From Diplonema japonicum (lineage: Eukaryota > Protista > Euglenozoa: Diplonemea), in assembly GCA_964019335.1 (NCBI GenBank), contig OZ025648.1, positions 868,001-932,000 on the forward strand: a DNA stretch of 64,000 bases, read 5' to 3'. Every line of letters starts with the position of its first letter. Within the stretch, counting starts at the first letter, position 1. Made by a program: the position numbers and the translations under genes. Below the pieces are notes generated by a model, which worked only from the letters and a program-made list of their open reading frames with translations, was not told where the DNA came from and did not search any database. Below are positions 1 to 63,751 of the stretch, piece by piece.

Positions 1-534
1 CCTCATGCAGCTTGACACGAACTCGTATGGATGAAAACAAAAAAAAAAACAAACAAAAAAAAAAAGGTACGGTGTTGCAATGGCGGGCAGTATCACCCAC
101 CCGCAGTTGGCCCCCAGTGAGTCATTTGCGACCCTGATCCCGTTGACGGTGAACCCGGCGAGTGCGGATAAAAAGGGGGAGCAGCATCTTAAGGTGGCGT
201 TGAAGACGTCAGCAGGTGTTGGTTTCGGTCAGGCGATATGCCCATTGGATTTCATATGCCTGCCCGGAAGCGGTCTGAGCAAGGAAGACTTTCTCTCTGT
301 GTGGAAGGGGATCCAAGACGAGAAGCAGTTCGCACTCAACACCAACGTGCAGGCGACCGTCGACTCCGCCCTGCGCGGTGCGGGGTACAACTTCATAACC
401 TGCCGATCGGACCCTTCCACTGATGGCCTCAACGCTATGCAAGATCACTACTACTACAGTGTCTGCACGCTGACGGGGCATCAAATTGTTTTCGAAGTTG
501 CTTTCAGCTCGCTCTCGCACGCTTGCATGGTATG

Positions 535-572
<38 letters not shown>

Positions 573-646
573 TTTCGATCCGTTCGCAAGCATCCAACTA
601 CTCCGAGCTTGTTCAACAGCACATCCTTGGGCTGCAGATTGTGTGA
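1..646 (+). CDS. AP-1/AP-2 complex beta-adaptin, C-terminal appendage (5'-partial)
   Basis: Spliced translation LMQLDTNS/YGVAMAGSITHPQLAPSESFATLIPL...FLSVWKGI...HACM/VSIRSQASNYSELVQQHILGLQIV* resembles the beta-adaptin appendage (QFNKNSFG...LxPG...FLxxWKxI). Introns 25-66 and 530-571; TGA ends 646. Confidence 0.75.
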
Positions 647-1138
647 ATTTGAAAAGAAAAAAAGGGGGGGGGGAAAGGGAGAGGGTATATATATAAAAAA
701 GGATTCGTGGGAAGGGTTTTTTTTTTTTTTTTTTCCCCTTTCTCTTTTCTTTTTTTTTAAAAGTAATCTGGTATGAAATAGATCCCCCCCCCCCCCCATT
801 TGGTGGGACCCTGTCTTTTTTTTTTCTTTCTTTCTTTTTTTTTAAAAAAAAAACTCTACACGCAATTTCTTTTTAAAGAAAAGGATTTCTGAGGGGAAAA
901 AAAAAAAGCAACACAAATCCTTTGTTCGGGATGGGGAGGGGTAGCCGCCATTAGGCGTTGTTATAAAAAGAAATTACTCTATCGATGTGTTTTTTTCTTC
1001 TTCTTTTCCTTCTTCTTTTTTTTTTCCAGTGTCTTTGTGCCCATAACCCCCCATTTTTTTTTTTTTTTCCCCCAGCTTGCTATTTATTGGATTTTTGTTT
1101 TGGGGAATAACAACGCACACAAATCTAGAGAGACTCCA

Positions 1139-1180
<42 letters not shown>

Positions 1181-1545
1181 ATGTTGCCCCGAATGGACAC
1201 GCTTTTTGTCCTTTCCCTGTGGGTTATTGGGGTTGTGAGTAACACAGGTGTTATGCTGGAGTCGGAGGGCGCGAAATTTCTGTCTAATAACAACACCCCT
1301 ATTACAAACAGCACCCCTTTTGCAACCCCTTCTGAAGATGGCGGGGATGACAGTGGGATGTCGATGGGTGTAAAGGTATGCCCCCCCCCCCACCCCACCC
1401 CCACGATCTCGTCACACAGGTGGTGATATTCCTGATAACGTATTTCCTCGCAATCGGCATGGGCATAGGAGGGGTCAAGGGCTACCGCCACGCACAGGGC
1501 GATAGCGAAACTGGCATGAAGAAATGGTTTTCCTTCGCGAAATAG
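1181..1545 (+). CDS. small type I membrane protein (signal peptide, S/T/D-rich stalk, TM, short tail)
   Basis: ATG after A-tract. Removing intron 1376-1419 (GTATG...CAG) joins ...MSMGVK to hydrophobic VVIFLITYFLAIGMGIGGV and then TAG at 1545. Confidence 0.6.
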
Positions 1546-1722: not shown

Positions 1723-2551
1723 ATGTCCCGTCTTGCTCGCAAACTGGAAGCGTTAAAGTGCCCCTACACCTGGTCTGATGAAAACATCACTATTGGTAAG
1801 ATACGAGAGATGGTAATTTGGCTTGAAGACACGAAAATCAGGTGGCTCCCTGTCGAGGAAAGAGCGGGGCTGAGGACGGACGACGAGCGAGAATGGCTGC
1901 AAGCGTTCCTGAGATACTGCCAAGAGATTGGCTACACGAAGTCTTTCGGGATAGGGCTGGGTCTGGACTACGCCTCGGAACCGTCGTTTAGACAGTGTTT
2001 AGATTGGGTGGTGGGGAAGGCTGTGAGGTTCAGCTTTACAGACAACCATTCCAAATTCAACGAGGGACACGAAAAGTACAGAAGCATGGGGATGTGCAAT
2101 GTGACGAAAATTCAAGAAAGTGCAGGCGATGAGGATATTCAAAAATATGATGTTTCCGACACGGAGGGAATGACAGAAATTTGTACACGGGTTCTTAACA
2201 GCTTGAAGCTCCCTGAAGATACCGATCTTGAAACAGGGCTTTTCACCATTGCAAGGCTGTGCAACGATGCGTGTTCTTTCCTTGACCACAATCGGCCCAC
2301 CGCCCCTCCTTCTGTTGACGAAATGCTTAGTCACCTTCCCACAGAGCACGCCAAGAACCCAAAACTTGAAAAAATCTTGAAGCTGCTCCGCACGCTCTTC
2401 GTCTCTGACGCGAGAGAGCTCCAAAACAGAATATCTGAAATTATCTGCGAGCTGCAAGGGGTTACACACAATATTAAAACAGACGTCAGGTATGTAAAGA
2501 ATAATAATCACGTTACTTTCTCTTTACAGCGCCGGGGTTGTAGGGAGTTAA
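1723..2551 (+). CDS. RTRAF: RNA transcription, translation and transport factor (C14orf166/CGI-99, RLL-motif; tRNA-ligase complex subunit)
   Basis: RKLEALKC..., VIWLEDTKIRW..EERAGLR and C-terminal RELQNRISEII.ELQ....KTD match the family. Intron 2490-2529 gives KTDVSAGVVGS*, like human KTDHRLGKVGR*. Confidence 0.85.
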
Positions 2552-3558: not shown

Positions 3559-3630
3559 ACTTTTTCTTTTCCAAGAAAAAAAAAAAGGTTTTTTTTTCAT
3601 CCCTGCCTCAAATAACAAGTATAGTAAGAA

Positions 3631-4359: not shown

Positions 4360-7300
4360 ATGTCGCAAGACGATGAGATGGAGGAAGAGGTGTACCCCAT
4401 CAACCTCGACATCGTGCGGTTCAGCTTGCACGCCTTCCACAACACTTTTAAGACTGACATGTCCAACGTGGACGCCATGTCTAGGACAATCATGCAGAAG
4501 GACTACCCTCGAGAGTCATGGAAGAGGGCCTTCAAGATGTTGTGCGGCATGAACGAGGACGCTGATCTGGAAAACTGGTCTGACCTGGGGTTCTCTGTGG
4601 GCGTGCAGGACTACAGGTTCAGGAACTTCTTCGCAGCCGTAGACCCTGAGCACGTTGATGACATCGAAAAGAATACAAGTCTCGCCTTGGACGAGACCCT
4701 GGACAGCAAAAGGGATATTCTGACGTGCATTGACGAAGTGACAGAAGAGCTTTGCCGGAAGTATCCCCTCGCTGTTTATGAGGACTGGGCAGGGGACTTC
4801 CCTCGGGCTCTTGAGGAGGGGCCTTTCATGGACGAAACCGGCGAAATTGTCAGACAACTCCCCCCTCCACCGCCCCCGCAGGACCCTGTTAAGGAACACG
4901 AACCCGAACCTGAACCTGAACAAGAGGATGAAGAAGAGCCTTACACTGAGACACCCGAGTTAAAACGAAGGTGGCTGCATTACTTCTACGACCTCCCTTC
5001 CGTCGCGTCATCGGGGCCTGCTGACGAGAAGAGAATCGAGTCCCTCTCTGAAGACCCTCGCCCCACCGTCGAGATCCTCACCGAGCTGGCCATTCAATAT
5101 AACGTCCCCGACGATGAGAAGTGGGAATACGAAAAGCGGCTGCGAAACAGCGCGGAGGACATCAAGAACGACTACGAGTTAAGGGTGCAAGAGTTCTTCA
5201 GCACTCACGCCCCCGATGCAAGGTCGCCGGATGCCGTCGCGGGCCACGTAGAGTACGTGATAAAGAATGACCTGTATGACAAGGAGTTCTGGCCTGCACT
5301 TTACTTGAAACACGGAGTGGACCCGAAGAAGGTATGGCCTGGCTCACGGCTACCAGGGGCACCCTTGCCAAGGGCTCCTGACGAGGGTGCTAAGAAGAAG
5401 AAGAAGAACTCGAAATCTTCGAGCTCGTCGTCAAGCTCACACCACACGAAGGAGAGCGTGAAAAAGAGGAAGGACAGCACATTGTCTGCCCGGGGGCATG
5501 CTGCGGCGCCTCTGCCAAGATCACCGCCTCGGAACCCATCTCAGCCACCCTCGCTGCCGCCTTCAGTAGTGCAGCAACCACTGCCCAGGTCGCGTCGTTC
5601 AAGCATGGCCGGTGACAACCTAGACCGCCCGCTTCCCCTATCCCGCAAGAGCAGCGCGGCTTCTCATGCGAGCAAAGCATCTCTCTACAGCACGCTCTGC
5701 ATCCCAGGTGTCTTTGCGTTCCGCTCTTTGAACTTCTCTGATATCAAGAATCCCGAGTCCTTAGAGCGTCTCGAAGCAGCTGCCAAGTGGGACATCTCTA
5801 AAGCCTTCTCGCACGACGACGTGGTCGTCGACAGCATGAAGGGGGCTCCCCTGTGCCTTGAGTTCCATCTGCGCGCGAGCAGCGACAAAGCCAAACACAT
5901 CCACGCCTTTGCAAACGATGCGCTGCAGAAGATGGGGATCACTTTCCCGAGTTTATCACAGGAGTACAGGCAGCTCACAGGAGTCGAGCCCAACATGAAC
6001 ATCGACTACGTGAGGACTGTGGTGCGACCGCCGATTTCTATTGAAGCGCACCAAGAAAACATAAAGCGTGGTGGCAGGGAGGAGTTGAAAGAGAAGCTAG
6101 AGTTCTTCCATGTGAAACACGCACCTGCAGAGGACTTCAAGAACGTGGACGCGCTGATGAAACAGTCGCAACTGGACGAAGAAGGCCTGTTCACAGCTCT
6201 GTATTCGCGATATGGGTTGGGTACGTATGACGGCCGCTACAGCGGTGCCGACTGGAAAGGGCGAGATGCAGGCAGCTCACAGCAGCCAGTGGCCTCGGAC
6301 GACGAGCGGCTGCGCAGGCGCTTGACGGATTTCTACATGACACACAACCCCTCTGAACTGTACAAGGTCGAGCTGGCCATGCAAGCAGGCCTGTCCGAGG
6401 ATGTTCTTTTTGCCCGTTTGCACAAAAGGTACGGAATCATGATGTCTGATGTGCAAACACCCTCTGCTACACCGCCAGTGGTCTCGGCAGCACCTATTAT
6501 GGGGCTGCACCAGACAAACGAGGACATTGCCCGCAAGGAGCGCAGCCTCTTTGAGGAGGCAGCAAACCTCGAAACACGAGAACGCATCCTTTTAGAGCGC
6601 GAACGTGCCATGGAGAGGGCCAACGACGAACGATTGCGGGTGGCACAGACACGTGACGATGCCCTGCGGGACTGGGAACGGCAGCTGCAGGCAAGGGACG
6701 ACAACGTGAGGCAGAGGGAGCAGGCCGCCATGCAGCGGGAAATGGTACTCGAGCAAAGCAAGTACAACCAGCCTCATGAACCGTCAGAGCTATCTGCTTA
6801 CAAGGAAAGGGAGATGCGTTTGGAAGATCGGGAGAACCGGCTACAAACGAGGTGGAGAGACGTAGCCGAGAAGGAGATACATGTTGCAGAGAAGGAAGCT
6901 GTAGTACGTGCGCAACAAGATACACTAGAAAGGGAGCAGCGCAACCTGAAACACTCTCGATCGATTTCGCCCACGCTTGAGCGCTCGAAGGTCTATGAAC
7001 AGGAGGAGAAACTGCGACGCCTGGGGGACAGGCTAGACAAGCAGCTGAAGCAAGTAAAAGAGAAGGAGGAGGAACTTCGGAACAAAGAGTACGCGCTCAT
7101 TGAGAAGGACTCAACGATGAAGATGGTTTCCATGCAGTCGCCGGGTAGGGCTGCTGCGGACAGCATCATCGCCGAGCAGCTGAGGGCACTGGAAGAACGT
7201 GAAAAGGCAATAACCGCAAAGGAGATTGCTCACATAACGTCCACACTACGCAACAGCAATGACAACTCGAAAGAGCAAATGCTGGACGCGCGTGAGAAAC

Positions 7301-8542
7301 AGCTCGACGATCGTGCCACCATGCTAACAAGAAGGGAGAGCGATCTGGAACACGCCACCCTGATGCACGAGGAAGATGTGAAGCTCCGAGAGTCACGGCT
7401 GCAGGATAGAACAATCCGCTTAGAGGCCCGCGAACAAGACCTCATGGAGCAGACAGCAGCGGCAGATGCAAAGGAGCGTAGAATGCTCCTCGGAGAGCAG
7501 AGCGCAGCGATATCACTCAAAACACGAGAATTCGAGGAACGAGCACGCGAGCTCGAGATGAGAGAGCGCCTTTTGCAAAGCAGAGAAACGGCAATAAAAC
7601 AGAAAGAGCAACAGGTATGTCATTACTACCATTATACACTTATCACTTATCTTTGCAGCTCGTTGAGTCGGAGCACGATAAACTAGCCGCGATATCTGCC
7701 GAAATGGCGGCGATGGCAGAACGGGAAAGGCTTCTGACGGCCGGAGAGGACGAGCTGCGGAGGATGAGTTACGAAGACGAAGACAAACGCAAACAGCTGA
7801 TAATGTCACAAGAGGAACTGACGAAAAATGCCAGGAGACTCGAGGAGCGTGAGCGGGACCAGGACAGAAGAGAGGTATGACCCTTTGAAATAATATAAAA
7901 AAAAAAACAAACCGAACAACAAAACAGGCACAACTCGCTACTTCAATAGACGAGGTTGGTAAAAAGGAAATCTTATGCAGAGCAGATGCTGATGAGATCC
8001 GGCGTCTTGAGGAAAGAATTAGAGAACTACAAGTCGATGCCGAAAGGAGACATCAAGGCGTCAGCGTGCAGGAAAGAGAATTGAGGGAACGCGAGGAGAA
8101 GCTGATAATGCAGGAAGCCATGGTCGAGGAACACGAGAGGATACTGAAAAGGAAAACGGAACAGCAAGAGAAGAAGCAACGGCACATGGAAGACATGGAA
8201 GCCTCCTTCAAGCGAAAGGAAGAGCTGGTCGCGCAGACCCTCCGTGAGATCGACAGGAAAGACGAACAAGAAGAGAGGCTGCACCACAGGCTGAGCAGTT
8301 TGAAAGAACGTGAAGACAGGCTGTTAGAACGAGAATCCCGCGTCTACACCGCCACACCCCCTCGTGCCCCCAAGTACTCTCATTACGCCGGTACTATCTC
8401 TCCTACTCGAAAACTCCCTGTTTCTGGTGGGTACACTTCCAGCATACAAGCTGATCTGGACTCGATTAGGGACAGCTTGGCCTCATTGACACCGCGTGAC
8501 GCTCCTTTTTCTGATTTAGTCTCGCCGAGGCTGCGGCATTAG
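4360..8542 (+). CDS. large coiled-coil protein with repeated ~45-aa 'RLxxFYxxHxP...LFxxLxxRYG' domains
   Basis: ATG 4360 follows TTTTCTTTCACAG. Introns 7615-7658 and 7875-7927 join the 4339, 7617 and 8066 ORFs in frame. Long E/R/K/Q heptad region. Confidence 0.8.
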
Positions 8543-8889: not shown

Positions 8890-11800
8890 ATGAGTTCGCT
8901 TACACGGGAGAAGCCACGGGTGTTCGTGTATGATGAACACGATTCATGGCCGCTCATTGAGGGGCAGGTTGCGAATCCTGCGGAAGGGTTCTACATGGTG
9001 ACGATGCCCAACAACGGTAAGAAGTACAGCATCAAGAGACTGAATTTCAACTTCGACAGCGGGTCAGTACCGAGCCCCGGGACCAAGCCCCACCTACACC
9101 CTTACCTGCACATTAAGGTTATTAATGTAGATATCGTTAGAGACTCGAAAGACCTTCGCACAAAATTAGAAACATGGGTGCATAGCCTTTACGGGGCAGA
9201 ATATCTTGTAATCCTTGTCCACCCTACTCTGGTTCAGCATAGGGAACACACTCCTAAGGAAGCAAAAGGCGGTGTTGTTGAAGCGTTGTTTTCAAAGAAG
9301 AATCCTGTCGATGCTGCCCGGCAAAGGATACAAGACATGGATTCCAAGCTGCGGGAGAAGTTCCGCACATTCTGCTGGGGCACGAGGGAAGCGGCAGAGG
9401 TCCCCACGGAGATACGGAAGCTCGTCTTCGCAACTTTCGACGCAAGACTTCAAAACTGCTTCAGAAACGCGAACGACCTGAAAAAAGACTGGGACAACAA
9501 CCCGAAGCTCTGCCCTTACATCGCCATCATCGACGAGATAGGCATGATCCTTCTACAGTTCGGCATGCGTGACGAAGCAGCCTGCACCTACGGCACACTG
9601 ACAAGGGAACTAGAAGACATGCACTTCCCCAACCCTGTCTTCGGTCTCTCCTTCGGCGACAAGGTCATCGACCCAATGTATGTACCAGACGCGAGTAAGG
9701 TGGCACAGCTGTTCCTGCTAGACCAAACACGGCGGGAGGATATTACATCATCACTGCGATCGGCCTCAGGGCAGCTCAGCGAAGTGGAGGTACGGGTGTT
9801 CATCTTTGTGAGCCAATGCACATGCTGGATGCCACCCAGCAAAAAAACCCCGAAGAAACTAAAGGAGAAATTCGAGCAGTGGCTGCAAGGTTTGGTGGAG
9901 CTCATGGAAAGAAGGAACATCCCTGCCCCGAACATAGAGGCCACCAAGTACACGATACAGATCTCCTTCTCTCAAATGGTCACATCGTGGGAGAGGAAGA
10001 AGCACGCGAGAAGCGATTCTTCACAAATCGACCTTGACCTGTCGGGTACCGTCACAGGTGAGACATCGCCGATACAATGCACGAGCCCCAAAACACAAGA
10101 AGCACCAACGTTTCAAATACACGAACCAGATGCCATCTCCGAAGCGGGCGTCCCTGGCCTAAACAACATGCATCACCTAGCAGCCGGCGGATTGGGAGGA
10201 ACATGGGGAAGCCCTGCACCATCCTCAGGCCAGTCACTGGTCGGAGACACAGCTGCCTTCTTTGACTCAACGAACAGGTACGAGTATACATCGATGAGAC
10301 ACGCTATCGAATGCACGCATATTGAAGTGCTTCTTGAGGCACGGGTCTCGTTCCTGAACCTTGGAAGGTACTTCAACTTAAAGATCCCCCGCAACGTGAC
10401 ACCAGACGACGTAGGGGAGGAGATCTTCACCGACCCGTCCGAGCTTTCCTTCACTGTGCAGGACGAGGGAGCCCCCTTCAACATGGAGGGTCTCAAGAGC
10501 CAGAAGGAGTTCGAGGAACATTACATCGCACTCACATTACACAACATGAGAGGATGCAAAGGCCACCTCATGCGCGGGCTAGAATGGGACGTTGCCCCCG
10601 CACTGGTTTCAAGGGGTTACCTCTCAGTGGCGTACGATCTCATCCGATCGCAAGCCGAGTACTACGCAGCACTGAAATGGGTGGATTTATCTATAAGAGC
10701 GAGAAGACTGGCCTTGGTGTGCCTCGCTGCCATGAAAGATGAGTACTCCACGGCATGGATCTCAACAGCGCTGTCGGTGATCTCAGAGTCGGAAAAAAAA
10801 ATTTGCAAAGAAGAAAAAATTGTACTGTGGAACTCATTGAAAACCAGGTTGGCACACATACCGAAAGGCCACGAGTTCCCTTTGCTGTCTCTTGCACGGA
10901 TAGAATCGATCAAAGTCGTGGAACAAGCAAGGCTTGTGAAGCTCAAAATCCAGTTCAAGATCAACGCGCCTTCCGAAGGTGTCATCGACGACCTCAGCAT
11001 GAAGCTCATGGAAATACCTGCGGTAGACGAGGCCTCTCGAAAATACGCATCGTTCGAAGCATCGCTGTCAGGACTATCCTTCACAGGCAACGAAGAGAGC
11101 CTCGAAGCCACTCTCGTAGGAGAACCCCTCCAACCGGGAGACTACAAAATAACGCTTATGACGATCAGTGTAGAAGGCATGGTGTTGCGACAATCTCTCT
11201 CAGAAGAGGAATGCATACTTATCGACCAGACCCTCATGACAGGAACCGAAGAGGAGTCGAAACTGACTAAAATCACCGATAAAATCACGGTCCATGTTGA
11301 TAAACTAGAACCCCTTGTGAAACTGTCCATAGAAAGAGGCGTTCACCCTGTAGAACACATGTTTGAAGGATCGTGTGAAGCGGCTGTGTTAACCATGAAG
11401 ATCAACGGTGAGCTCCCTGAACTGAAGGAATGGGAAGGGCTGTCGACATCAGAGTCCCCTAAAGGGCTTCCGAGCAAAACCTTCAGCGGAGACGAGTTAG
11501 CCATGACGCACGACAGCTGTGTTACCGCTCCTCAGGTGGTTAGTTTGCCTGACGTGACACCCCCTGATGGCTGTGTCGGGTACCTCACCTTCGACACTCA
11601 GGACGAGCACAATGCTGTCATCGACTACTTCGACACTACTGGCTGTGATGACAAATCGATCCCTTTGATGATCACGTCGCGTGATGGGCACTCCATGTCC
11701 TTTGTACCTCCGGAGGCGGCTGTCCTCTCTTCAGACAGCGTACACACTGTGCCAATAGACGGCCTGCGTTCGACCTTTGCTGTTGTTCCTAAAGACACAG

Positions 11801-12334
11801 CGACCAACACAGCGGGAGGGGAGTGGAAAATCCGGATCCCTGTGAACCCAGTTTTGTGCGGGAGGAAGCTCGGCGTGAGTTTTCTTCACACGCTGCCTCA
11901 GATGGTTGTGGTATGGCAGAAAAAAAAAGGAAAAAAAAAAACACAAAAAAATAGGAGTCCCCTGTCTTGGCATCTACATGCGTTCTCCCGGTTCCTTTCA
12001 CGATGCCGTTTAAGGTCTGCATGCACGCGAGACCGGACGAGACACGAGTTTTTGCCAATGTATGTGAACAAAAAAAAAAAACTTTTTTTTTTTTAAACAA
12101 ACATAAAAGGCAATGTTCGAGAACCAGCTTCCCTTCAAAGTCAGACTTCTCTCCATCGAACCTGTCATGCCCGACAGCGAGCCCTACGGCAGTGTCGGCG
12201 ACAATCGCTACGAGGTGGTGAGGAACAAAACGTGTGCTGGGATCGTACTGGGCCCGAAGGAGGGCTATGCCAAGGCCCTGTCCTTGCAGTGTGGGAAGAA
12301 TGAGGTAGCTAGCAAGATGTGCGAGTATGAAACC

Positions 12335-12370
<36 letters not shown>

Positions 12371-12852
12371 ACAGAGTTGCCATGAGGGTGAAGTATCAGA
12401 GTGCTGAAGAGTCTGATGAGACAAAATCTGTTAACACGTTCGAGACGTTCCCTGTAAGGTGGCTCCCGCCCGTCCCTCCACGTGCTACCGTTTACGTAAC
12501 TATGGCGGACTTTGCGGAGCCGTTGCTTCTCACTAAGACTGTTGCCTTCAACATAACTATTACCCATAACGGTCGACCTGAGGACAGTCCTCTCCACCTT
12601 TGGTCTGTTGTCGTTTTCCCTCTCGACGATTGGTTTGTGGTCGGCCCCTGCAGAAAGCTCATCACATTAACTACCGAATCCCCGACAGTTTCCTTCCCTG
12701 TGCACATGACGCCGATTACCACCGGGAATCTCGGGACCCTCTCGGTCAGGCTCACCTCGCGGACCCAGCATGGAATGAGCTCACTTCCTGACCAAGAAAT
12801 CCCCATCCGGTTGGTACAGTCTCAGGCAAGGGTCATGGTTGTCAATGGATGA
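8890..12852 (+). CDS. TRAPPC10: TRAPP II complex subunit TRAPPC10/Trs130-like
   Basis: N-terminal HPYLHI.....D...K...L.TW and CPYIAIIDEIGMILLQFGMRDEA..Y; C-terminal DWFVVG...VHMTPITTGNL..LSVRL. Introns 11911-11954, 12060-12109, 12325-12374. Confidence 0.7.
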
Positions 12853-13355: not shown

Positions 13356-14606
13356 ATGGACCTCCGAGTTGGGTCGAAATTTCGGATAGGCAGAAGGATA
13401 GGAGGGGGATCGTTTGGTGAGATCTACCAAGGGACAAATATACAAACCTTAGAACCGGTGGCGATAAAATTGGAGCCTGTGAAAACAAGGCATCCGCAAC
13501 TGCTGTACGAAAGCAGGCTATACAAGCTGCTGCATCAAGGGCAGCAGGTGATAGGGATCCCGCAAGTTCGGTGGTACGGTGTAGAAGGCGATTTCAACGT
13601 AATGGTGGTGGACCTGTTGGGGCCCTCGCTGGAGGACTGTTTCAACTACTGTGGGAGGTCGCTTTCCACAAAAACCGTGTTGATGCTGGCAGACCAAATG
13701 ATTGCACGGGTGGAATTTTTGCACAACCGCAATTTCTTGCACAGGGACATCAAGCCCGACAACTTCTTAATGGGGCTTGGTAAGAAGTCGCACCACGTCT
13801 ACATGATCGACTTTGGTCTGGCAAAGAAATACCGCGACCCGAAAACCCACCAACACATCCCGTATAAGGACGGAAAGAACTTGACAGGTATATATATTCT
13901 CAGGGAAAAAAAAAAAAAAAAAAAAAAAAAAAAGGAACTGCCCGGTACGCATCAATCAACACGCACACCGGAATAGAACAGTCGAGACGGGACGACCTTG
14001 AGGCAGTGGGGTACATTGTGATGTACTTCCTTAGGGGGCAGCTTCCTTGGCAGGGGCTGAAGGCGCACACAAAGAAGCAGAAGGTAGGAGAACAAAAAAA
14101 AAAATCACAAATAGAAAAAAAAAAAAAAAAAAATCTCCGTAGTATGATCGCATCGCTGAAAAGAAGATGCAGACGTCAATTGCACAGCTGTGTGCGGGGT
14201 ACCCTCAGGAATTCTCCAATTATCTGGTATTTGAGGGAGGGAGGAGGGGGGGAAAAAATTGCAGAATTACGTGCGGTCCCTACGTTTTGACGACAAGCCT
14301 GACTATCCCGTGTTGAGGAGCAGGTTCAAGGAGCTGATGGCGAAGGAGGGCTGTGTCTGTGATTATGTGTTTGATTGGACCATAAAGCGGATACAGGAGT
14401 GTGTCTATGCTGATGAGTCGCAGCGGAGAGACGCAAGGAGAAGGGTATTTTTTTGGGGGAGAGGGAAAAAAAAAAAAAAAAAAAAAAAGTCCCCTGAATC
14501 CACCGTCAACGCCACTCAAGCATCTTCCGAAAAAGAAAAAGAGAAAGAGAAAGAAAAGCGTGAAAACGATAATGGGGTTGTCGTGCAGCCGGTCGGAGCT
14601 GAGTAG
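13356..14606 (+). CDS. CK1: casein kinase 1
   Basis: [36 protein letters not shown]; spliced [37 protein letters not shown]. Introns 13888-13934, 14084-14142, 14227-14264, 14445-14489. Confidence 0.97.
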
Positions 14607-31783: not shown

Positions 31784-31809
31784 AAAAAAAAAAAAAAAAA
31801 AAAGAGGAA

Positions 31810-36029: not shown

Positions 36030-36074
<45 letters not shown>

Positions 36075-52302: not shown

Positions 52303-55236
52303 ATGAGCTTCATAAAAAAGCTCATAAAGCCCAAGAAAAAGAAGAAGAAAGATGAAGCGGTTTTGACACAGTTTATAGAAAGGACGTTTCTGTTGCAAGT
52401 TCCGGTTGGCTTCGACACCGAGAAGCTAGAAGAAAAACTGGCAAAGGTGGGAAGCGAGGAAACGATGATGGCACTGAACTGCACCACGCTGCAGTCCCTG
52501 GGAGAGTTCCAGCAAATGAAGTTCGAAGACGGACAACGACCAGAAGACCTGGGCATGCTGATGAAAGTCTGCCTTCAAATCCACAAATGGCTCAGTTCCT
52601 CCCCTTCAGCCCTCGCGGTCATTGTAACAAATTTCGGTCCTGCCGACCCTGCTGCCCTCATATGCGGCTGTCTCATGTACTATATGCATCCCTCTGCCTT
52701 TGGCGGTTCGCCGATCGAAAAGCTTCGTGACAACAACGTTGTGTCCTTCTTCCCTTCTACCTCGCGGTATGTGAAGTGGTTCGGTTTCACCCTGCAAGGC
52801 ATCCACCTGCATACCGATCGTATGCTTCTTCAACGAATTGTCATCAAGAAAGCGGGCGATCTAACATACGACAATTTTGCCCTCTCAATCACCGACCCGA
52901 AAAGCAACCCCCTCTACCACACTAGGGATCCCGACATCTTCCAGTTGGACGATTCCATTGATATAAAACTCGATAAGTGCTCGATTTTCGGTGATTTTGA
53001 AATATCGTATGTAGTATACCTGACTGAGGAGGAGCCTCCTCGGACGGAGTGCAAGCTCAGATACGCGTTTTCAACATTTTTCCTGTCCCTCCCTGAAGGC
53101 GCCGACACCATTGCTCATGCCGTGCCACGGGATGAGCTCGACTACACCTCCACCAGCAAGATGGTTGATCCCGGCCTCACCATGACCCTTCACTTTCAGA
53201 AGTCCCCTGTAGACGAGGCCATCGCGGAAGACACCATTCTCATTGATGATGTGAGCCGAATAGTCACCCACGCTCCTAGCACCAATGCCGGGTACGACCT
53301 TACTATTAACATAAACGGGTCGCCTGACGCTACTGCCAAAGGGTCCGTGGAGCAGACACAGGATTATGAGTACGTTGCTTTAAAGCTTTCCGAGGATACG
53401 CCTTATAACACGCTCGTTAAGGAGTTTAAGGAGTCTATTAAGGAGAAGGCGAATACTAGTTTTGACTCCTTTCCGCAGCATAAGCTCAATGATGATACGA
53501 CTGCCAACGAGCTTGATGGATTCTTTCATGAGTCGCCCTGTACACCTCTCTCGCCGACCGGTTTTGGTGCTTCTCCGCCGCCTCCGCCTATGGCAGTGGG
53601 ACCCCCAAAACTTGGAGTGATGCCCCCGCCCCCGCCCCCACCCCCTCCCGGGGCACCTCCTCGAGCTCCTCCGCCTCCTGGTGCCCCGGCACCCCCGCCT
53701 CCTCCGCCCGGTAAGGGAGCACCCCCCCCGCCTCCCCCCGGAGGCGGCCTCGCGCCTCGCCCTCCTCCGCCTCCTCCTGGAAAAGGTGTACCTCCACCCC
53801 CTCCAGCTGGAGGAATCCCTCCTCCCCCTCCGCCGCCTGGAAAAGGTGGCCCTCCACCACCTCCCGGTGCCCCTGGCGCGCCGCCCCCGCCTCCACCTAT
53901 GTTCGGGAGTGCTGCAAAACAGGTTACGAAAGCTCTGCACTGGAAAAAGGTTCAGGTGAACATCGCAGCAGGCTCCGTGTGGGAGAGCATCTCCGAGAGG
54001 AGCAAAAAGGACTCCGCCATCAACCTGGACAACCTGAAGGAGATGTTCAAAAAGGAAAGCACCGCGAAGAAAGCGCAGGAGAAGAAACAAAACACGAAGA
54101 AGCAGTCGACAGCCATCTCGGGCAAGAGGTTAAACAACCTGGGCATCGTGCTGAAGGCGGTGAAGGTACACAAAAAAAAAACCCCCCCTCTCCCTTCAAA
54201 AAGAAAAAAAAAACCCACCCTCCAGCTATCGCCTGAACAGATAAGGGACGCACTGCTGCAGTGCAATCAAGAAACGATGACGCAGGGCGTGTTGGAACAG
54301 ATGTACCCAATCATACCAGACGAGGAGGAGGTAAAGGGAGTGATGAAGGAGGTGGGGTCGGATGTAGAATGGACCATCATGCATGTATGTTACTTCCTTT
54401 CTTGCTTCACAACCTTCCATCAGGAGTACGTCCACATCATGGCACGGGACGTCCCTGACATGAAGGAGCGCATCCTGCTGTGGCTCTTCACATACGAGTT
54501 CAAAGAAGCGATGGACACCACACTGTTCGACATCGAGAGGCTGCAGACCGCACTGGACCTCCTGCTTCTTGAAAAAAGCAAGTTTTTGGACGTTCTAGCT
54601 GCCGTGCTTGCTGTGGGTAATACACTGAATGAGGGGACTTCGAAAGGTGCTGCTATAGGATTCTCTGTAGGCGACTTGGACAAGGTATGGGGCACTGGGG
54701 AATGCATTATAACAGCTATGTGCGTTGCGGGCCACAGACGGTTCCACTCTGCTCGAGTTTTTTGTGAAGAATATCGTCGAAAACTCGCCTGAGCTGCTTG
54801 GTTTTGTTGAAGAGCTTGCGCCGCTTGCGGCGGCACTCAACGTGCCCCTCTCCATGGTGCAGCAGGAGGTCGGGAAGCTGGCGGCGAGATTCAAGAAAAT
54901 AGACTCGAAGGTGTCGGGAGAGGATGCCTTCTCGATGATGCTCAAAGGGTTCAAAGACAGAAACGCTGCCAATGTGGCCAAGCTTGTCTCGTCAAGAGAA
55001 ATCGTAAGCAAAAAAGTCCGGAAGCTGGCCGATCATTTTGGAGAGGTGTGGCGGAAAAAAAAAAAAAAAAAAAAAAAAAAACACAGACGGCGGCTCAGTT
55101 CGACGAGACACAGTTTTTTTCACACATCAACACGTTTCGGTTGGCGTTTCAGAAAACCTTGAACGCGCACAAAGAACGGGAAGCTCGGAAAAAAAAGCAG
55201 AAAAAAGAAGAGCTCCAGCAGGCAAGCCGTCCTTGA
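52303..55236 (+). CDS. formin with N-terminal PTEN-like/C2 region, FH1 and FH2
   Basis: PSTSRYVKWF and IFGDF (PTEN/C2-like); polyproline FH1; KALHWKKV, KRLNNLGIVL, VLAVGNTLN...GF, TLLEF. Introns 54166-54225, 54385-54423, 54685-54715, 55046-55086. Confidence 0.9.
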
Positions 55237-56633: not shown

Positions 56634-56890
56634 ATGTCTTGGATCAAGCATGTCGATGACTCAACTGGGAGAGAGTATTGGTACAGTCAGGAAACCTTTG
56701 AAAGCAGGTGGACGGACCCAGAGGAGGTCTGTGAAGTGAAAGAGGACAAGGTGGGAGAGGAGAGCGACGAGGAAAAAGCCGAGTACTTATTCACAAAGTA
56801 CGACGAAGACGAAGATGGGAAATGGCTGGAGGCGGAGGTCACGAAAGCGGTCCCATCGTTGAACCAAGAAGCTTACGAGATGGTATAAAC

Positions 56891-56937
<47 letters not shown>

Positions 56938-57149
56938 AGCGTTGCTCGCATCTTAAAGTCCCGTCTTCTGAAGGCTGGACGCGCCAAGATGTAATTGACA
57001 TGTATATGAATGAACCAGGCCGCCGTTCACTCAAATCTGATTACAAGTCAGCCAAGCAAGAGAAGATCCCAGAGGCGGTGATGATCGCAGCTGGTGCAGC
57101 GCCACCCCCTATTGTTGTGGATTCTTTCCCCCCACCACAGACCCGGCAG

Positions 57150-57181
<32 letters not shown>

Positions 57182-57555
57182 CCCTCTCTCAATTTTTACA
57201 GAATTTGATGATAAGCGGGTCCACACGAGCGCCGGCGAAGAGAAAAATGAATTCTAAAAAGAAGAAGTCAAGCAAGGATGTGCTGGAGACCCCGCTCAAA
57301 GAAGATTTGACGTGCTCCGAGGAACTCATCAACTATTATGACGCTCTTCTGCTTCAGAATTTCGTGCAGCAAGAGCAACTCAAGCACATCACCCTGTCGG
57401 CTCTCACACAAGCGAGCATGGCACACTGCCACCCCCACCCCCACCCCCAGCAGATTGATCAGTGCAAAAGAAAATTTAAGAAACAATCAATGCCGGCTCC
57501 AACTATAGCCGCCTTGGCAGCATCTGATCATGCTATCGTCCCCCTCGCACCGTGA
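56634..57555 (+). CDS. WW-domain and EF-hand-like protein
   Basis: WIKHVDDSTGREYWYSQETFESRWTDP; LFTKYDEDEDGKWLEAEV. Introns 56883-56939 and 57150-57201 join three ORFs in frame. Confidence 0.75.
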
Positions 57556-60249: not shown

Positions 60250-60321
60250 GCGGTTTTCGTATAGTGGTTAGTACACTTCGTTGTGGCCGAAGAAACCCGA
60301 GTTCGATTCTCGGAAGCCGCT
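60250..60321 (+). tRNA. trnH-GUG: tRNA-His (GTG), intronless
   Basis: Full cloverleaf: acceptor GCGGTTT/AAGCCGC, D arm GTAT..GTAC, anticodon arm CTTCG-TTGTGGC-CGAAG, T arm CCGAG-TTCGATT-CTCGG; T6 follows. Confidence 0.95.
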
Positions 60322-60323
60322 AG

Positions 60324-60329
60324 TTTTTT
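60324..60329 (+). terminator. RNA polymerase III terminator
   Basis: TTTTTT two nt after the tRNA discriminator base. Confidence 0.7.
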
Positions 60330-60350
60330 CATTTAAAAAACCCCCCAGGA

Positions 60351-61994
60351 ATGGTGAAAAATGCACCAGCAGAAAATGCTGTCTCCGTGAGAGCAGGTGT
60401 CACAGTGGTGCCTCCGGGAAATATTCCCTCACCACCCGAAGGTCTAGGGGAATGTGTGAGTTCTCGCGATGCGTTATGGGAACATGTATTCGTATTGGCC
60501 CCCAAGTTAGTGAGGTTTAATAAGAGGAATATGGATGGCATCAGGCATCCGAGGCGATGCCACAAGACATGGGGCGAGCAGTTTTACCCAAGTAAGAGTT
60601 TGAATAAAGAAGTAGAGGGTGGTGAGGACCGAACACGGTGGGCGATTGTGGGAGAGGAACATGCAAAGGCGTTGACAGAAGAACATTCTCGTTTGAAAAG
60701 CGAGATCATGGAATCATTTGAATTCATGACGATATGCAAAAGATGGTGGGTGCGACTCTCGAACGACGTGGATGCAACTTTAGCGGAGAGCTTCGTGCTC
60801 TCGAAGCTAGGGTATTGTTATATTGAAACACGCATGCTGTTTGAATTGTGCGGACCTGTTTCTGTACTGGAGTCTATTGATGCCATGGAGGCAGACTTCC
60901 TCCATGATCGAGACCACACTGACGGCGTAGCGTTTGACCGATACTGCCATTCTCTCTTTGAAGTCATCGACACTTGGACTTCTACCACTGCCCCTGAAGA
61001 GTACATCGCACTTCTTGCCGACCTCTACCTTCGTGTCTTCGAGGAGGATCCCTTGAATGAACTGGACGAAGAGGTCATTGCTCTCCAAAAAGTCGTTGTT
61101 CTCACCGAAGCGGGGCAGCGCAAAAAGATAGCCGAGTGGGAAATGAACCGGCTTGAAAAAAGCTCGAAACGGCACCTACAAACTCAAACTTTGAAAGGGA
61201 CATTGGCGCCCGTGACATCTCCGCTCGATTCCCCATTGGAACGCGTCAAAATGGTGCCCAAAGGACAGAAAAAAGGAATTGCTGGTTTGCTGCCAACGTC
61301 GCCTCAACACAAACCTATCTTTCCAGAATTGGGCGACACAATGTCAAGTGCAGTGAGCAGAGCCACCCTCACACCTGTGGTCCCTTCGTTGCAGCTGTTC
61401 AGTTTGGCAACACCGCCGCAGAAATTAGAAAGACGAGCGTCCCAATCTTTAAGAAGGGGTTCGGTTCTCCGCATGGCCAGTGTGTCCTCATCGACGGGAA
61501 AAGCAATTACCGCAATTAATGGTGTGGCCAAGGAACCGTCTTATGCTGTGTCGGTGCATGAACAGCAAGAAGAAGTTGTATCGCTCCCAATGGTAGACGA
61601 TGAGTTTAAAGACGCGTTTTTCGAACCTTCTCCCCCGTCCAGCTCGGCTCCTAGCGAGTCAACGCGGGTTAAAAAGCACAACGAAGATGTTGAAGCAGCG
61701 CAGATTGCTGTTACAAGGCGAAATGTGTCTCAAAAGAATAAGCCCCGTACACTACCGGTTAAACGTCTTCGAGGCGCTTGGCGGCCTCCTCCATTTATCA
61801 AAGCTGGCCAAGCCAGCTCCAATTGCGAAACTTCCCCCCACGTTACATTGCCTCACAAACTTGGCGGTGTGGGCACCTTCTATTTAGGACGAAAGAAGGT
61901 ACGAAGTTCTGTCAAGGTAATTCCATATGCGACATACCCCCCTGCTGCTGCTGAGCCCGCTTACCCGGACACAATTGGGGATACTTTTAGTTAG
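60351..61994 (+). CDS. hypothetical protein with EF-hand-like segment
   Basis: 547-aa ORF; DFLHDRDHTDGVAFDRYCHSLFEVIDTW; disordered S/P-rich C-terminus. Confidence 0.7.
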   Translation: MVKNAPAENAVSVRAGVTVVPPGNIPSPPEGLGECVSSRDALWEHVFVLAPKLVRFNKRNMDGIRHPRRCHKTWGEQFYPSKSLNKEVEGGEDRTRWAIVGEEHAKALTEEHSRLKSEIMESFEFMTICKRWWVRLSNDVDATLAESFVLSKLGYCYIETRMLFELCGPVSVLESIDAMEADFLHDRDHTDGVAFDRYCHSLFEVIDTWTSTTAPEEYIALLADLYLRVFEEDPLNELDEEVIALQKVVVLTEAGQRKKIAEWEMNRLEKSSKRHLQTQTLKGTLAPVTSPLDSPLERVKMVPKGQKKGIAGLLPTSPQHKPIFPELGDTMSSAVSRATLTPVVPSLQLFSLATPPQKLERRASQSLRRGSVLRMASVSSSTGKAITAINGVAKEPSYAVSVHEQQEEVVSLPMVDDEFKDAFFEPSPPSSSAPSESTRVKKHNEDVEAAQIAVTRRNVSQKNKPRTLPVKRLRGAWRPPPFIKAGQASSNCETSPHVTLPHKLGGVGTFYLGRKKVRSSVKVIPYATYPPAAAEPAYPDTIGDTFS

Positions 61995-62116
61995 TTTTTT
62001 CTTTTTTTTTTTTATGTGTTTTGAAACACTGAAAAATTCTCACCCGTCAAAAGCAAAAAAAACAAAAAAAAACAAAAACAAAAGGAGAAGAAAAAAAAAA
62101 AAGGAAAATAAAGGAA

Positions 62117-63751
62117 ATGGAAGTGCTGTTATTAGCGATGCTTGTTGTAGGGGTGTCCGCTGAGGACGCGTGTTGGGAGGAAAAGAAAAATATGTACATG
62201 TCGTGTTTCGCCGCGGATGACGACACCCAAGGGAGCTTGGACGAGATGCAGAAGAAGTGCATTGATCTGGAAGACGCTTGCTTGGGTGTGACCTGCTCGA
62301 AAGAACAAAAGTGCAGCATGAGACACCACCGCAGGGAGGGCTGTGAGGGAGGCAAGTTCTTAGACGAATCGAAGGTGGAGGAGACCACGTACGTGAAGGT
62401 CTGCAAAGTCAACGAGCACAAGTGGGACATATACCCCCACAAAGTATGTCATTATGTCAAAAACCCTTAAACCAAAACTAAAACCAGTACATCCCATGCT
62501 ACGCCAAAGATGACCAGGAAGTAGGTGAACTTCTTGAGAGGAAGATCCGTTGCTCTGAGATGGGCGATGAATGCGTGGGTGTGACATGCGGCTCGAAGGA
62601 CGGTGGCACCACCACCTTCAACTGCACCGTCCGCGACCACACAGCAGGCTGCAAGGGTGGTCTTGCCGACCCCCTCGCTGACTCGGAGGATGAGGTCTCG
62701 TTCGTCATGGTATGTTGAAACAACCAAAAAAAAAATTATATTTCTTAGGACCCCATTGTGTTCCCCACCACCATACCCGCCACTAACGCACCTCCTATTG
62801 GCGAGTCCTGCCGTTTTGAGGTTCACGACAAGTCCTCCTTCACCTGCAACCCTCCCGATGTTAACGCCAAGAGGATGACCCTAAAGGAGGCGCAGCAGCA
62901 GTGTGTTACCATGAAGGACCCTCAGCAAGGGGGGTTTTGCAACGGTGTTGAGTGCACATCATGGGATGGCGAGCTTGAGACATGCCTCCCGCACATGCAC
63001 TGCGTTGCGGAGGGTCAGCAGATGCTGAAGGTCAGCACAAGCGTGGTCCACATTAAGAAGTGTTCCGACGGGAAATTTTGCACCGACCCGTGCAACGCCA
63101 AGGAAGAGTTCAAAAACCACGTATGCGAGAACGACTGCGACTGTGGAGGCGTCAGGTACTGCTCTGAGTCTGGGTACTGCAAAAACCCCACGGGTCTCTC
63201 ACCATTCGAGGAGCTGTGCATCACGGACCATGATTGCATCTTCGAGAAGCACACAAACAAGTACATGAAGTGTGAAGCCTCCGCTTCCACTGGTAAGGAC
63301 AAGATGACTCTTGAAGAGGCTCAGAAAGTATGCAAAGAGATGAAAGGCCTCTGCGCTGCCGTCACTTGCGTAAAGAATGAGTGTTCTCTGCGTAACCACA
63401 TGTTGGACACGTGTAACGAGCCGCATGGTCTTTTCTTCAACCAAGGTGAGGACACCTATCTGAAATGCTGTGGACCTGAGAAGGAGAAGCGGTGCCCTGG
63501 AGGAACTAGCAGCGGGTCCAGCAATGGCCACACGGGTTTTTTGGTTTTCTTGGTGATTTGTCTCATTGCTGGTGTGGCTGTGCTTGCCTACTGGAACCGC
63601 CAGATGGCCAAGGACTACATAGCCCCAAACACCTTTAATGCTGTTCCTCAGGACGAGGAGGTGTGTACTTTTTTTTTTTTCTCACTTCCACAAAATATGA
63701 CAGGCTGACAACAACTGGGTGATTGATGACACTAAGGAAGACGACGAGTAG
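62117..63751 (+). CDS. Cys-rich type I surface protein with four internal repeats
   Basis: Signal peptide, four C...[KM]Y..C...L.E....C......C.[GA]V.C units, TM FLVFLVICLIAGVAVLAYW, acidic tail. Introns 62444-62487, 62710-62748, 63661-63703. Confidence 0.8.

Follow-up and report, generated by a model that had tools for sequence, protein, structure and literature searches.

Intron-poor eukaryotes usually retain their introns towards the 5' ends of genes (Fink 1987; Mourier & Jeffares 2003, as summarised in Zhu & Niu 2013, PMC3652778). The same summary presents a self-primed reverse transcription (RT) model together with "extraordinarily large exons" (Feiber et al. 2002; Niu, Hou & Li 2005), and internal intron loss has been described in fungi (Nielsen et al. 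2004, PMC532390; Sharpton et al. 2008, PMC2395259). For the diplonemid Diplonema japonicum, 10,131 RNA-supported introns are known, with a median length of 41 nt, a G/GTATG donor, an A-rich tract and a CAG acceptor (Thakur et al. 2025, RNA 31:1826, PMC12621601), and the splice profile of 51 introns from our own models agrees with this description. Intron placement along genes was not analysed in that study, in the genome note (PMC13598402) or in the D. papillatum genome paper and its supplements. Here we show that intron density in D. japonicum genes is a 3'-anchored gradient. Our literature search found no published account of such a 3' pile-up, which runs opposite to what other intron-poor eukaryotes show and appears to be unreported.

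Introns in the 64-kb window

We analysed a 64,000-nt window of D. japonicum nuclear DNA (GCA_964019335.1, contig OZ025648.1, 868,001-932,000, forward strand), in which all genes lie on the + strand, long first exons measure 1.2-3.3 kb and introns are ~40-60 nt long with the form GTATG...A-rich...AG. Gene models from an independent dynamic-programming (DP) model, supplemented with three in-frame introns from a motif scan or homology, yielded 32 introns in 13 genes (Table 1), slightly fewer than the 35 counted in an earlier sequence-only reading; the gene finder may miss introns flanked by very short first or last exons. That reading had placed every intron within ~1.4 kb of the stop codon. All 32 introns obey this limit, the greatest distance from intron start to stop being 1,395 nt of genomic sequence (GT4 intron 1), but it is broken elsewhere by dyneins, EF2 and a 5.9-kb gene. 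Six of its seven pairs of first-exon length and distance from first intron to stop were reproduced identically (3255/928, 3021/942, 1959/831, 1496/1395, 1233/1082 and 532/719); the exception was formin, given as 1863/1071, for which our model has a first exon of 2,082 nt and a stop 852 nt from the first intron. The single RTRAF intron indeed lies 22 coding nt ahead of the stop in the DP model, and ~15 kb of the 44.7 kb of coding sequence (CDS), all of it >1.5 kb from a stop, is intron-free, as the reading had also claimed for regions far from stops.

Evidence from RNA contigs, a transcript-derived protein and a protein alignment confirmed eleven of the introns, together with two long intron-free first exons and one spliced-leader (SL) junction. 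The comparison with assembled RNA contigs covered one 6-kb piece of the window, where the loose end of a contig shows the SL tail joining the TRAPPC10-like transcript at 8874, right ahead of the ATG. The STT3 model translates into an exact match of the 720-aa transcript-derived protein P0121.

Table 1. Introns and long first exons in the window (positions within the window)
Feature	Position	Strand	Evidence and remarks
Intron, 5'-partial gene ending 646	25..66	+	DP model; GTATGG..AG, 42 nt
Intron, 5'-partial gene ending 646	530..571	+	DP model; GTATGA and A-run; stop 117 nt downstream
Intron, small gene 1193-1545 (LSM6 in the sequence-only reading)	1376..1419	+	DP model; low gene score
Sole intron, RTRAF/RLL gene 1723-2551	2490..2529	+	Pfam RLL on exon 1; DP model
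Intron-free first exon (3,255 nt), "4360" coiled-coil gene	4360..7614	+	Uninterrupted ORF; no credible in-frame intron candidate
4360 gene intron 1	7615..7658	+	Sequence read; DP model
4360 gene intron 2	7875..7927	+	Sequence read; DP model
Intron-free first exon (3,021 nt), TRAPPC10-like gene	8890..11910	+	RNA contigs colinear, 9267-9418 uncovered
TRAPPC10 intron 1	11911..11954	+	Spliced out in RNA contig X2 record 11
TRAPPC10 intron 2	12060..12109	+	Spliced out in RNA contig X2 record 11
TRAPPC10 intron 3	12325..12374	+	Spliced out in RNA contig X2 record 11
CK1 intron 1 (LTG/TARY)	13888..13934	+	RNA contig X7 record 25; frame check
CK1 intron 2	14084..14142	+	RNA contig X7 record 25
CK1 intron 3	14227..14264	+	Joint present in RNA contigs X1, X2, X7
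CK1 intron 4, in-frame, stop-free	14445..14489	+	45 nt absent from RNA contig X7 record 25; undetectable by ORF logic
Intron-free first exon (1,959 nt), CLC channel gene	19088..21046	+	Pfam Voltage_CLC; ORFs P0001/P0003 of two other genomes stop there too
CLC intron 1, in-frame, stop-free	21047..21085	+	13-residue gap vs D. papillatum P0002, transcripts P0004/P0005; splice scores
CLC intron 2	21156..21197	+	Frame shift links CBS-domain exon; DP model
CLC intron 3, in-frame, predicted only	21791..21853	+	DP model
Intron 1, gene 31165-32874	31943..32015	+	DP model; GTAACC donor
Intron 2, gene 31165-32874	32087..32133	+	DP model; weak donor, uncertain boundary
STT3 first exon (1,233 nt)	34777..36009	+	Identical to residues 1-411 of P0121
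STT3 intron 1	36010..36073	+	Joined model equals P0121 exactly
STT3 intron 2	36773..36814	+	Joined model equals P0121; position retained in P0123
STT3 intron 3	36977..37022	+	Joined model equals P0121; GTTTGT donor
GT4 glycosyltransferase intron 1, in-frame	47304..47351	+	Motif scan; earlier DP runs
GT4 intron 2	47440..47493	+	DP model
GT4 intron 3	47660..47709	+	DP model
Formin intron 1, in-frame, predicted	54385..54423	+	Motif scan
Formin intron 2	54685..54715	+	DP model
Formin intron 3	55004..55086	+	DP model; 3' end of gene provisional
Intron 1, gene 56634-57555	56883..56939	+	DP model
Intron 2, gene 56634-57555	57150..57201	+	DP model
Cys-rich gene intron 1	62444..62487	+	DP model
Cys-rich gene intron 2	62710..62748	+	DP model
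Cys-rich gene intron 3	63661..63703	+	DP model; weak donor, least certain

The bias could be produced by intron calling if long first exons concealed in-frame introns or if short 5' exons were missed. Splice signals are low in information and in-frame, stop-free introns are real (CK1 intron 4 and CLC intron 1), but comparison with the RNA contigs and P0121 established colinearity and correct starts for the first exons of TRAPPC10 and STT3, and a candidate scan returned only 8 in-frame candidates against 4 in the out-of-frame control, with the convincing ones all in the 3' part. Hidden introns, a possibility that the earlier reading had itself raised, thus do not fill the long 5' exons. Moreover, an intron of ~45 nt in most cases disrupts the frame or contains a stop, so that ORFs of 3,000-4,600 codons cannot conceal many of them. 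We consider an artefact highly improbable.

A 3'-anchored gradient beyond the window

We further extended the analysis to a sample of 264 kb and to four gene families. The 264 kb contained 82 genes and 62 introns (~0.76 per gene), with introns in 25 of the 82 genes (~30%); 49 of the 62 lay in the 3' half of their genes (deciles of relative position: 4, 1, 1, 5, 2, 9, 10, 7, 14, 9). The 3' skew was present, though weaker, in the 200 kb drawn from four other chromosomes (gene-level Wilcoxon test on mean relative intron position, P = 0.005 for the window, 0.025 for the independent 200 kb and 2.5e-4 combined). In genes of at least 2 kb, the zone 250-1000 nt past the ATG held no introns and the matched zone 250-1000 nt ahead of the stop held 15; counted by gene, this was 0 versus 8 genes (P = 0.008).

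Similar results were obtained in long genes. Among 24 dynein heavy-chain genes of ~13 kb each, in which reading-frame breaks (n = 26) served as a proxy for introns, break density fell with rising distance from the stop (0.65, 0.14, 0.14, 0.08 and 0.005 per kb), that is, ~0.65/kb within 0.9 kb of the stop, ~0.1/kb from 0.9 to 5 kb and 0.005/kb beyond. Fourteen of the 26 breaks were within 300 aa of the C-terminus, the final 7% of the gene (P = 2e-10). Nine of the 24 genes were single ORFs, and the most upstream break lay in the 3' half in 14 of the 15 interrupted ones, among them genes with terminal introns downstream of ORFs of 4,000-4,600 codons. HECT ligase genes likewise had ORFs of 916-3,585 aa, then breaks inside the terminal 300-aa domain. 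Introns per gene reached a plateau of ~1.2-1.3 once the CDS exceeded 2 kb (~1.1 in the 13-kb dyneins), and overall density was ~0.6-0.8/kb within ~1 kb of the stop, ~5-fold less between 1 and 5 kb from it and near zero beyond.

These results bear out two claims of the sequence-only reading, namely that the bias is opposite to the usual 5' bias and that absolute 3' distance fits better than relative position, with introns lying in the last 2-35% of the 13-kb dyneins and reaching mid-gene in the 1.6-2-kb CCT, HSP70 and CK1 genes. The bias is a steep gradient with exceptions and a long tail, not an absolute limit; the window displays it cleanly because no intron-bearing gene there falls in the tail.

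Exceptions and possible splicing constraints

Ten of the 26 dynein breaks lay >1.4 kb from the C-terminus, and the 5.9-kb gene had introns 1.4-2.2 kb from its stop. EF2 carried introns 65 and 192 nt past the ATG, ~2.5 kb from the stop, whose removal restores the canonical EF2 N-terminus. Some HSP70 paralogues carried start-proximal introns (with introns at model position 77), and one C2 gene had an intron 65-250 nt past the ATG, as in EF2 and the HSP70 paralogues. Thus, some highly expressed genes contain a small separate class of introns at most ~250 nt from the start codon.

The earlier reading had proposed that cis-splicing works only near the 3' end. If the cis-spliceosome were efficient only near the cleavage or downstream trans-splicing site, upstream introns could not persist, and the window on its own agrees with this; however, it is contradicted by the start-proximal introns of EF2, HSP70 and C2 and by dynein introns 3-5 kb upstream of stops, which leaves such a mechanistic limit scarcely credible. 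The same two sets of introns conflict with another proposal made there, namely that selection removes 5' introns competing with SL trans-splicing.

In a broader form of selection, 3' introns would be retained for a benefit to export, 3'-end formation or regulation within polycistronic units, while body introns would be purged to avoid SL trans-splicing or premature polyadenylation at their 3' splice sites. Cis-introns have A-rich tracts and trans-splice acceptors follow long T/C tracts (also Thakur et al. 2025, PMC12621601), which suggests pressure to distinguish both. The persistence of 5'-proximal introns in the highly expressed EF2 and HSP70 is in line with this explanation, as are kinetoplastids, where two of three retained introns have a long first exon with the domain sequence on one side and a second exon of low complexity on the other (PMC11613528). 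However, a 3'-end role needs one intron rather than two to four clustered in the last 700 nt, ~70% of genes and the nine uninterrupted dyneins do without any, introns adjoining the SL acceptor occur, and a smooth distance dependence is not predicted. We therefore regard selection as quite improbable.

Intron age, gain and loss

We then compared intron positions among orthologues. The first CLC intron, with its ~650-codon first exon, is common to two genomes only 51-56% identical, and across the two genes examined, CLC and STT3, positions are common to genomes 51-86% identical; by this comparison, the examined introns are old and not a recent burst. STT3 intron 1, present in D. japonicum as well as in three other genomes, is precisely absent, in one case seen at protein resolution, from P0123 of a related genome, with flanking residues intact. 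P0123 keeps intron 2, and in the STT3 tree it falls within intron-bearing lineages (moderate support, 82/89). The orthologue comparison that the earlier reading had suggested for separating ancestral retention from gain returned an upstream intron lost and a downstream one retained, and loss is the simplest reading of this only polymorphic position. By this one gene family and a moderately supported tree, loss may proceed from the 5' side, upstream introns before downstream ones. A C2 paralogue pair differs by one extra intron at the 5' end, which is compatible with upstream-first loss.

Alternatively, introns could have been gained by reverse splicing into mRNA, followed by poly(A)-primed RT and recombination (an RT-mediated gain model of Cohen, Shen & Carmel 2012, as cited in PMC11613528). 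Since such RT is poorly processive, gains would pile up within ~1 kb of the 3' end; the length scale equals that of 3'-primed cDNA, and the gradient would be explained without a new type of template. No intron positions common to hemistasiids and P. papillatum were found (Thakur et al. 2025, PMC12621601), so diplonemid introns may be largely lineage-specific, and the C2 pair does differ by an additional intron. That intron, however, is 5' and not 3', and both the old CLC and STT3 positions and the simplest reading of the polymorphic one argue against gain. Among 66 introns, no families of similar sequence were found (four low-complexity pairs), nor were introns at the same positions in paralogues similar in sequence, and phase 0 predominates (42 of 66), as also noted for introns taken as ancestral (Kostygov et al., PMC11613528). 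Gain of this kind is unlikely. Introner-type or burst gain was not supported either, given the absence of similar-intron families among the 66 and, in the two genes examined, CLC and STT3 positions that are neither lineage-specific nor young.

The reading we favour, with chances that we put at nearly even, is that template-mediated loss may have removed introns precisely, proceeding from the 5' side and usually halting before the 3' end, and left the gradient as its footprint. Such loss would draw on copies of SL-capped transcripts that have a complete, spliced 5' end but no spliced 3' end. They could derive from nascent or incompletely processed RNA, either directly or by way of reverse transcription, or from internally or self-primed cDNA that never reaches the last kilobase, although tests of the self-primed variant in other organisms did not support it (Zhu & Niu 2013, PMC3652778). 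Loss templated by RNA with its 3' introns still unspliced had been among the mechanisms proposed in the earlier reading; it remains viable and would predict the polarity observed in STT3. If gene conversion used such copies, introns of the gene body would be erased and the last ones spared; introns very near the 5' end would also be spared, since the SL is not encoded at the locus and they would therefore have no homologous flank. Several dyneins have a lone intron 3-5 kb from the stop, then ~1,000 intron-free codons and a terminal cluster, for which a single 5'-to-3' conversion step would be insufficient.

Comparison with known systems

Like the classical 5'-biased genomes, D. japonicum is intron-poor and combines strong position dependence with very long intron-free exons and one precise loss; unlike them, it keeps introns mainly in the last kilobase or so, start-adjacent ones being a minority. 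The self-primed RT model, as summarised in PMC3652778, predicts cDNA without the 3' end and hence 3'-most introns kept beside huge exons, as here. It was put forward for scattered cases, and a genome-wide gradient scaled with distance is not known to have been described, whereas the D. japonicum gradient is genome-wide, as far as the 264-kb sample and four families extend, and scaled with distance. In fungi (PMC532390, PMC2395259), body introns were lost and end-proximal ones kept, which resembles the two retention zones of D. japonicum; however, the surviving fungal introns are not 3'-heavy, and the genes, unlike those of D. japonicum, are neither SL trans-spliced nor polycistronic.

Gene models and intron content of the window

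The window (contig C1, G000:C1:868001-932000) belongs to an assembly of 62.5 Mb in 132 contigs, and all of its long ORFs lie on the + strand. Genes named by Pfam encode RTRAF/RLL, an LRR protein, a CLC channel, a GH2 mannosidase, STT3, a GT4 glycosyltransferase, PhoD and a formin. A tRNA-His (GTG) gene also sits within the protein-coding array, on the gene strand. We modelled genes by exon chaining, combining codon log-odds with splice-site weight matrices (PWM) and allowing introns of 28-110 nt. This PWM model replaced earlier versions of the gene finder, in which neighbouring genes were fused via long false introns or short exons were missed; A-rich content was dropped as an intron score because intergenic DNA is equally A/T-rich. 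The finder recovered all seven RNA-confirmed introns and called only 2 introns on the antisense strands of 264 kb. Together with three in-frame introns from motif scan or homology, it gave 32 introns in 13 genes, each starting at most 1,395 nt before its own stop. The sequence-only reading had counted 35 introns, all within about 1.4 kb of the stop; the positional claim thus holds for all 32, and the gap in number probably lies mostly at the provisionally modelled 3′ end of the formin gene. The exon lengths and intron-to-stop distances given in that reading for the 4360 gene (coiled-coil), TRAPPC10, CLC, GT4, STT3 and CK1 were reproduced to the nucleotide.

Direct support came from a 6-kb stretch (8800-14700) compared with assembled public contigs, namely RNA of the same strain (X7), RNA of two relatives (X1 and X2) and DNA (X3). 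These contigs confirmed three introns in TRAPPC10 and four in CK1, and the 3-kb first exon of TRAPPC10 was colinear with RNA except for 152 uncovered nt. A spliced-leader (SL) tail was joined at 8874, a few bases 5′ of the TRAPPC10 ATG, and the gene therefore has no hidden 5′ exon; a homologue search with this first exon at E ≤ 1e-10 found none. For STT3, a EukProt transcript-derived protein was 100% identical to the window gene, and in a local comparison the translation of our three-intron model (one intron with a GTTTGT donor) equalled the 720-aa protein (P0121) exactly, start included.

The introns are tiny (median ~47 nt in our set, n = 51) and take the form G|GTATG, A-rich body, (C)AG|G, which agrees with the published account of 10,131 D. 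japonicum introns (median 41 nt, GTATG donor, A-rich tract; Thakur et al. 2025, PMC12621601). Throughout the window, long T/C-rich tracts precede trans-splice acceptors and cis-introns carry A-runs instead of a polypyrimidine tract (e.g., 8640-8840 vs 11911-12374), a contrast that may be the cell's means of separating cis from trans 3′ splice sites. Within a 2-kb stretch without genes, the 3′ part of the SL (ACAGTTTCTGTACTTTATTG) recurs letter for letter with GT directly after it, and a ~30-nt segment beside this copy is repeated 600 nt downstream. Either the copy marks an SL-RNA gene or it was left behind by an SL-headed element; no SL-RNA family was identified in the window with Rfam.

Introns concealed within open reading frames

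Some introns are multiples of three and stop-free, so that an ORF reads them as lysine-rich or low-complexity insertions; such introns will be annotated as coding sequence by mistake. CK1 intron 4 is of this kind and is confirmed by RNA. In CLC, alignment with a D. papillatum protein and two transcript proteins revealed a 13-residue insertion in the genomic reading only, which on this alignment is an in-frame intron; our finder had read through it, and the sequence-only reading had placed it correctly. That reading had also named in-frame introns throughout the long first exons as an observation that would speak against a 3′ bias. A scan of all exons returned 8 in-frame candidates vs 4 expected from an out-of-frame control, and the four convincing ones lay in the 3′ parts of genes in every case. 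There can be few of them in ORFs thousands of codons long, since an intron of 45 nt will in most cases disrupt the reading frame or bring in a stop codon.

Coordinates of in-frame introns and of other sequence features (window positions unless a contig or fetched stretch, L00x, is named)
Feature	Location	Strand	Support or remark
Multiple-of-3, stop-free intron (CK1 intron 4)	14445-14489	+	RNA
Multiple-of-3, stop-free intron (CLC)	21047-21085	+	homologues
Multiple-of-3, stop-free intron, predicted	21791-21853	+	gene model
Multiple-of-3, stop-free intron, predicted	47304-47351	+	models/motif scan
Multiple-of-3, stop-free intron, predicted	54385-54423	+	motif scan
Copy of SL 3′ part	22255-22295		exact copy
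Repeated ~30-nt segment	near 22325 and 22935		
tRNA-His (GTG)	60249-60322	+	
Tandem paralogues (L004-L005)	C2 window 8535-10775, 12267-14380		
Partial tandem copy of EF2 3′ end	L016:7414-7625 (C12 window)	minus	
STT3 paralogue (L001)	G000:C5:750775-751959		
STT3 paralogue (L003)	G000:C48:53173-54378		
8-base telomere-like repeat	L009:4314-4603 (C7, ~204.3 kb)		abuts 200-N gap

Intron positions in the window and in an independent sample

Because introns cluster by gene, genes were the unit of testing. Relative intron position averaged 0.73 in the window, with values above 0.5 in 10 of 11 genes (Wilcoxon, p = 0.005). An independent sample of 200 kb (4 × 50 kb from chromosomes C2, C7, C12 and C17) kept the 3′ skew in weaker form (mean 0.64, 10/14 genes, p = 0.025), and the combined 264 kb, with 82 complete genes and 62 introns, placed 49 of the 62 in the 3′ half (p = 2.5e-4). 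Among genes of at least 2 kb, no intron fell 250-1000 nt after the ATG vs 15 (in 8 genes) in the mirror zone before the stop (p = 0.008). [quoted passage not shown]

Several genes of the independent sample carry introns outside the 3′-terminal zone. EF2 has introns 65 and 192 nt after the ATG, and joining the exons there restores the canonical N-terminus of EF2. In a gene of 5.9 kb, four introns lie 1.4-2.2 kb before the stop, and one further gene has an intron 1.7 kb from its stop. Two tandem paralogues on C2 have five 3′ intron positions in common, occupied by introns without sequence similarity, and differ solely in one copy's extra 5′ intron, 216 nt after the ATG.

About 1.2 kb downstream of its stop, the EF2 3′ end is partly duplicated in tandem, two EF2 introns included almost unchanged; the copy resembles the repeated gene ends reported for D. 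papillatum (PMC10161547). On C7, an array of the 8-base telomere-like repeat, (GCAAACCC)n, adjoins a gap of 200 N inside a chromosome-scale scaffold, and this site is an internal scaffold join.

Frame interruptions in large and small gene families

The wider evidence comprises the 264-kb sample and four gene families. For a test free of gene models, we located Pfam matches in the species' own genome and measured the length of the open frame around each match. Dynein heavy chains were scanned with four domains marking the start, first third, last sixth and end, which gave 24 usable genes of ~13 kb on 21 contigs; the dynein-like loci C6, C8:599053, C4 and C16:488335 were excluded for incomplete data, and upstream breaks occurred in two of these four. 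Nine of the 24 dyneins are single ORFs (3,711-4,648 codons). The other 15 encode their N-terminal domains in one giant ORF (2,316-4,607 codons) and break late, the most upstream break falling in the 3′ half in 14 of them; in ten dyneins the last 300-residue domain is in two to four pieces with ~40 nt between them. With distances estimated from ORF lengths and model coordinates, break density was 0.65/kb in the last 0.9 kb, then 0.14, 0.14 and 0.08/kb out to 5 kb, and 0.005/kb beyond, and the last 7% of the gene held 14 of 26 breaks (p = 2e-10).

HECT ligases, whose catalytic domain is always C-terminal, agreed with the dyneins: ORFs of 916, 1,003, 1,585, 1,621 and 3,585 codons precede frame breaks that lie within that last domain, and three further ORFs (3,931-4,312 codons) are unbroken. 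In the CCT and HSP70 genes (1.6-2 kb), breaks extend to mid-gene; the first 150-190 codons are break-free in most CCT genes, and in some HSP70 paralogues the frame is broken around codon 80. The dyneins, the HECT ligases, the short families and the length plateau together therefore describe a 3′-anchored gradient scaled in nucleotides, plus a small 5′-proximal class, with very few introns in the parts of the gene body remote from the 3′ end. The limit of ~1.4 kb proposed from sequence alone describes the window (maximum 1,395 nt) and does not hold as a limit elsewhere, as introns in EF2 and the 5.9-kb gene, the 1.7-kb case and 10 of the 26 dynein breaks lie beyond it.

Intron age and the probable polarity of loss

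Exon structures of D. papillatum and other diplonemids were inferred only from the ends of ORFs called on unannotated ENA assemblies. For CLC, ORFs of 687 and 725 aa in two genomes (51-56% identical) track the D. japonicum first exon and diverge from it directly past the intron 1 donor (LL[Q/E/D]|V); these common ends indicate that intron 1 and the ~650-codon first exon are old. For STT3, ORFs from three other genomes stop where D. japonicum has intron 1. The ORF of a fourth genome (P0123, 84% identical) continues across this position, its sequence conserved there, and terminates precisely at the position of intron 2. In a tree of STT3 first exons, P0123 groups with D. japonicum and P0122, and the intron-bearing P0124 and P0125 fall outside (support 82/89). 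The simplest reading of this single case is a precise loss of the upstream STT3 intron in P0123 with the downstream one kept. Two more STT3 paralogues occur in the D. japonicum assembly; the copy on C5 has a 747-codon open frame without a break, vs three introns in the window copy. No similarity families were found among intron sequences, and 42 of 66 introns are in phase 0.

Models of intron loss

Precise template-mediated loss that started 5′ and stopped short of the 3′ end is the leading candidate explanation, since it would account for the gradient and its scale, for the near-absence of introns from the gene body, for the start-adjacent introns and for the one loss observed. A model of 3′-biased intron gain and a selective one are less likely alternatives. 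Two explanations proposed in the sequence-only reading, that cis-splicing works only near the 3′ end and that 5′ introns were selected against for competing with SL trans-splicing, are contradicted by introns found beside the SL acceptor and by others that lie 3-5 kb ahead of stops. Isolated upstream introns in some dyneins show that loss was not a single clean step.

Under template-mediated loss, one plausible template would be SL-capped transcripts with the last introns still unspliced, in line with the nascent-RNA route suggested from the sequence; this is plausible in a polycistronic system, in which processing at the 5′ end precedes cleavage at the 3′ end by a long interval. Another candidate would be cDNA whose synthesis starts from an internal primer or from a folded-back poly(A) tail, as in the self-primed reverse-transcription model (Feiber 2002 and Niu 2005, as summarised in PMC3652778). 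We consider it rather unlikely that the dominant route in this polycistronic, SL trans-splicing genome was repair or conversion templated by chromatin-tethered transcripts, SL-capped and spliced upstream and unspliced near the cleavage site. If true, the ~1-kb decay length of the gradient would preserve, like a fossil, the product of splicing lag and polymerase speed, and the gradient would report on natural RNA-templated DNA repair across the whole genome.

Significance and comparison with known systems

The 5′ bias of surviving introns is the chief comparative argument for the standard loss model, in which poly(A)-primed cDNA is the template. A free-living eukaryote with a strong, distance-scaled bias in the opposite direction is a natural counter-example and makes a long-standing question testable, namely what kind of nucleic acid serves as the template for intron loss and from which end it acts. 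With genomes and transcriptomes already available for several diplonemids, losses and gains can be counted by position. The finding also has practical weight: because diplonemids combine huge first exons, clustered 40-nt A-rich introns, tiny terminal exons and lysine-rich-looking, in-frame stop-free introns, gene finders trained on other eukaryotes will mis-model their genes.

Literature searches found no report of a 3′ intron bias, and no positional analysis of introns was found in the D. japonicum intron paper (PMC12621601), the genome note (PMC13598402), the D. papillatum genome paper with its supplements or the kinetoplastid survey (PMC11613528). In kinetoplastids, two of the three introns lie between a long first exon that encodes domains and a second exon of low complexity (Kostygov et al., PMC11613528), a layout that may be related to the D. 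japonicum pattern. Internal intron loss in fungi and the self-primed model provide partial precedents. Intron-poor eukaryotes offer the nearest known parallel in their 5′ intron bias, the polarity of which is reversed in D. japonicum.
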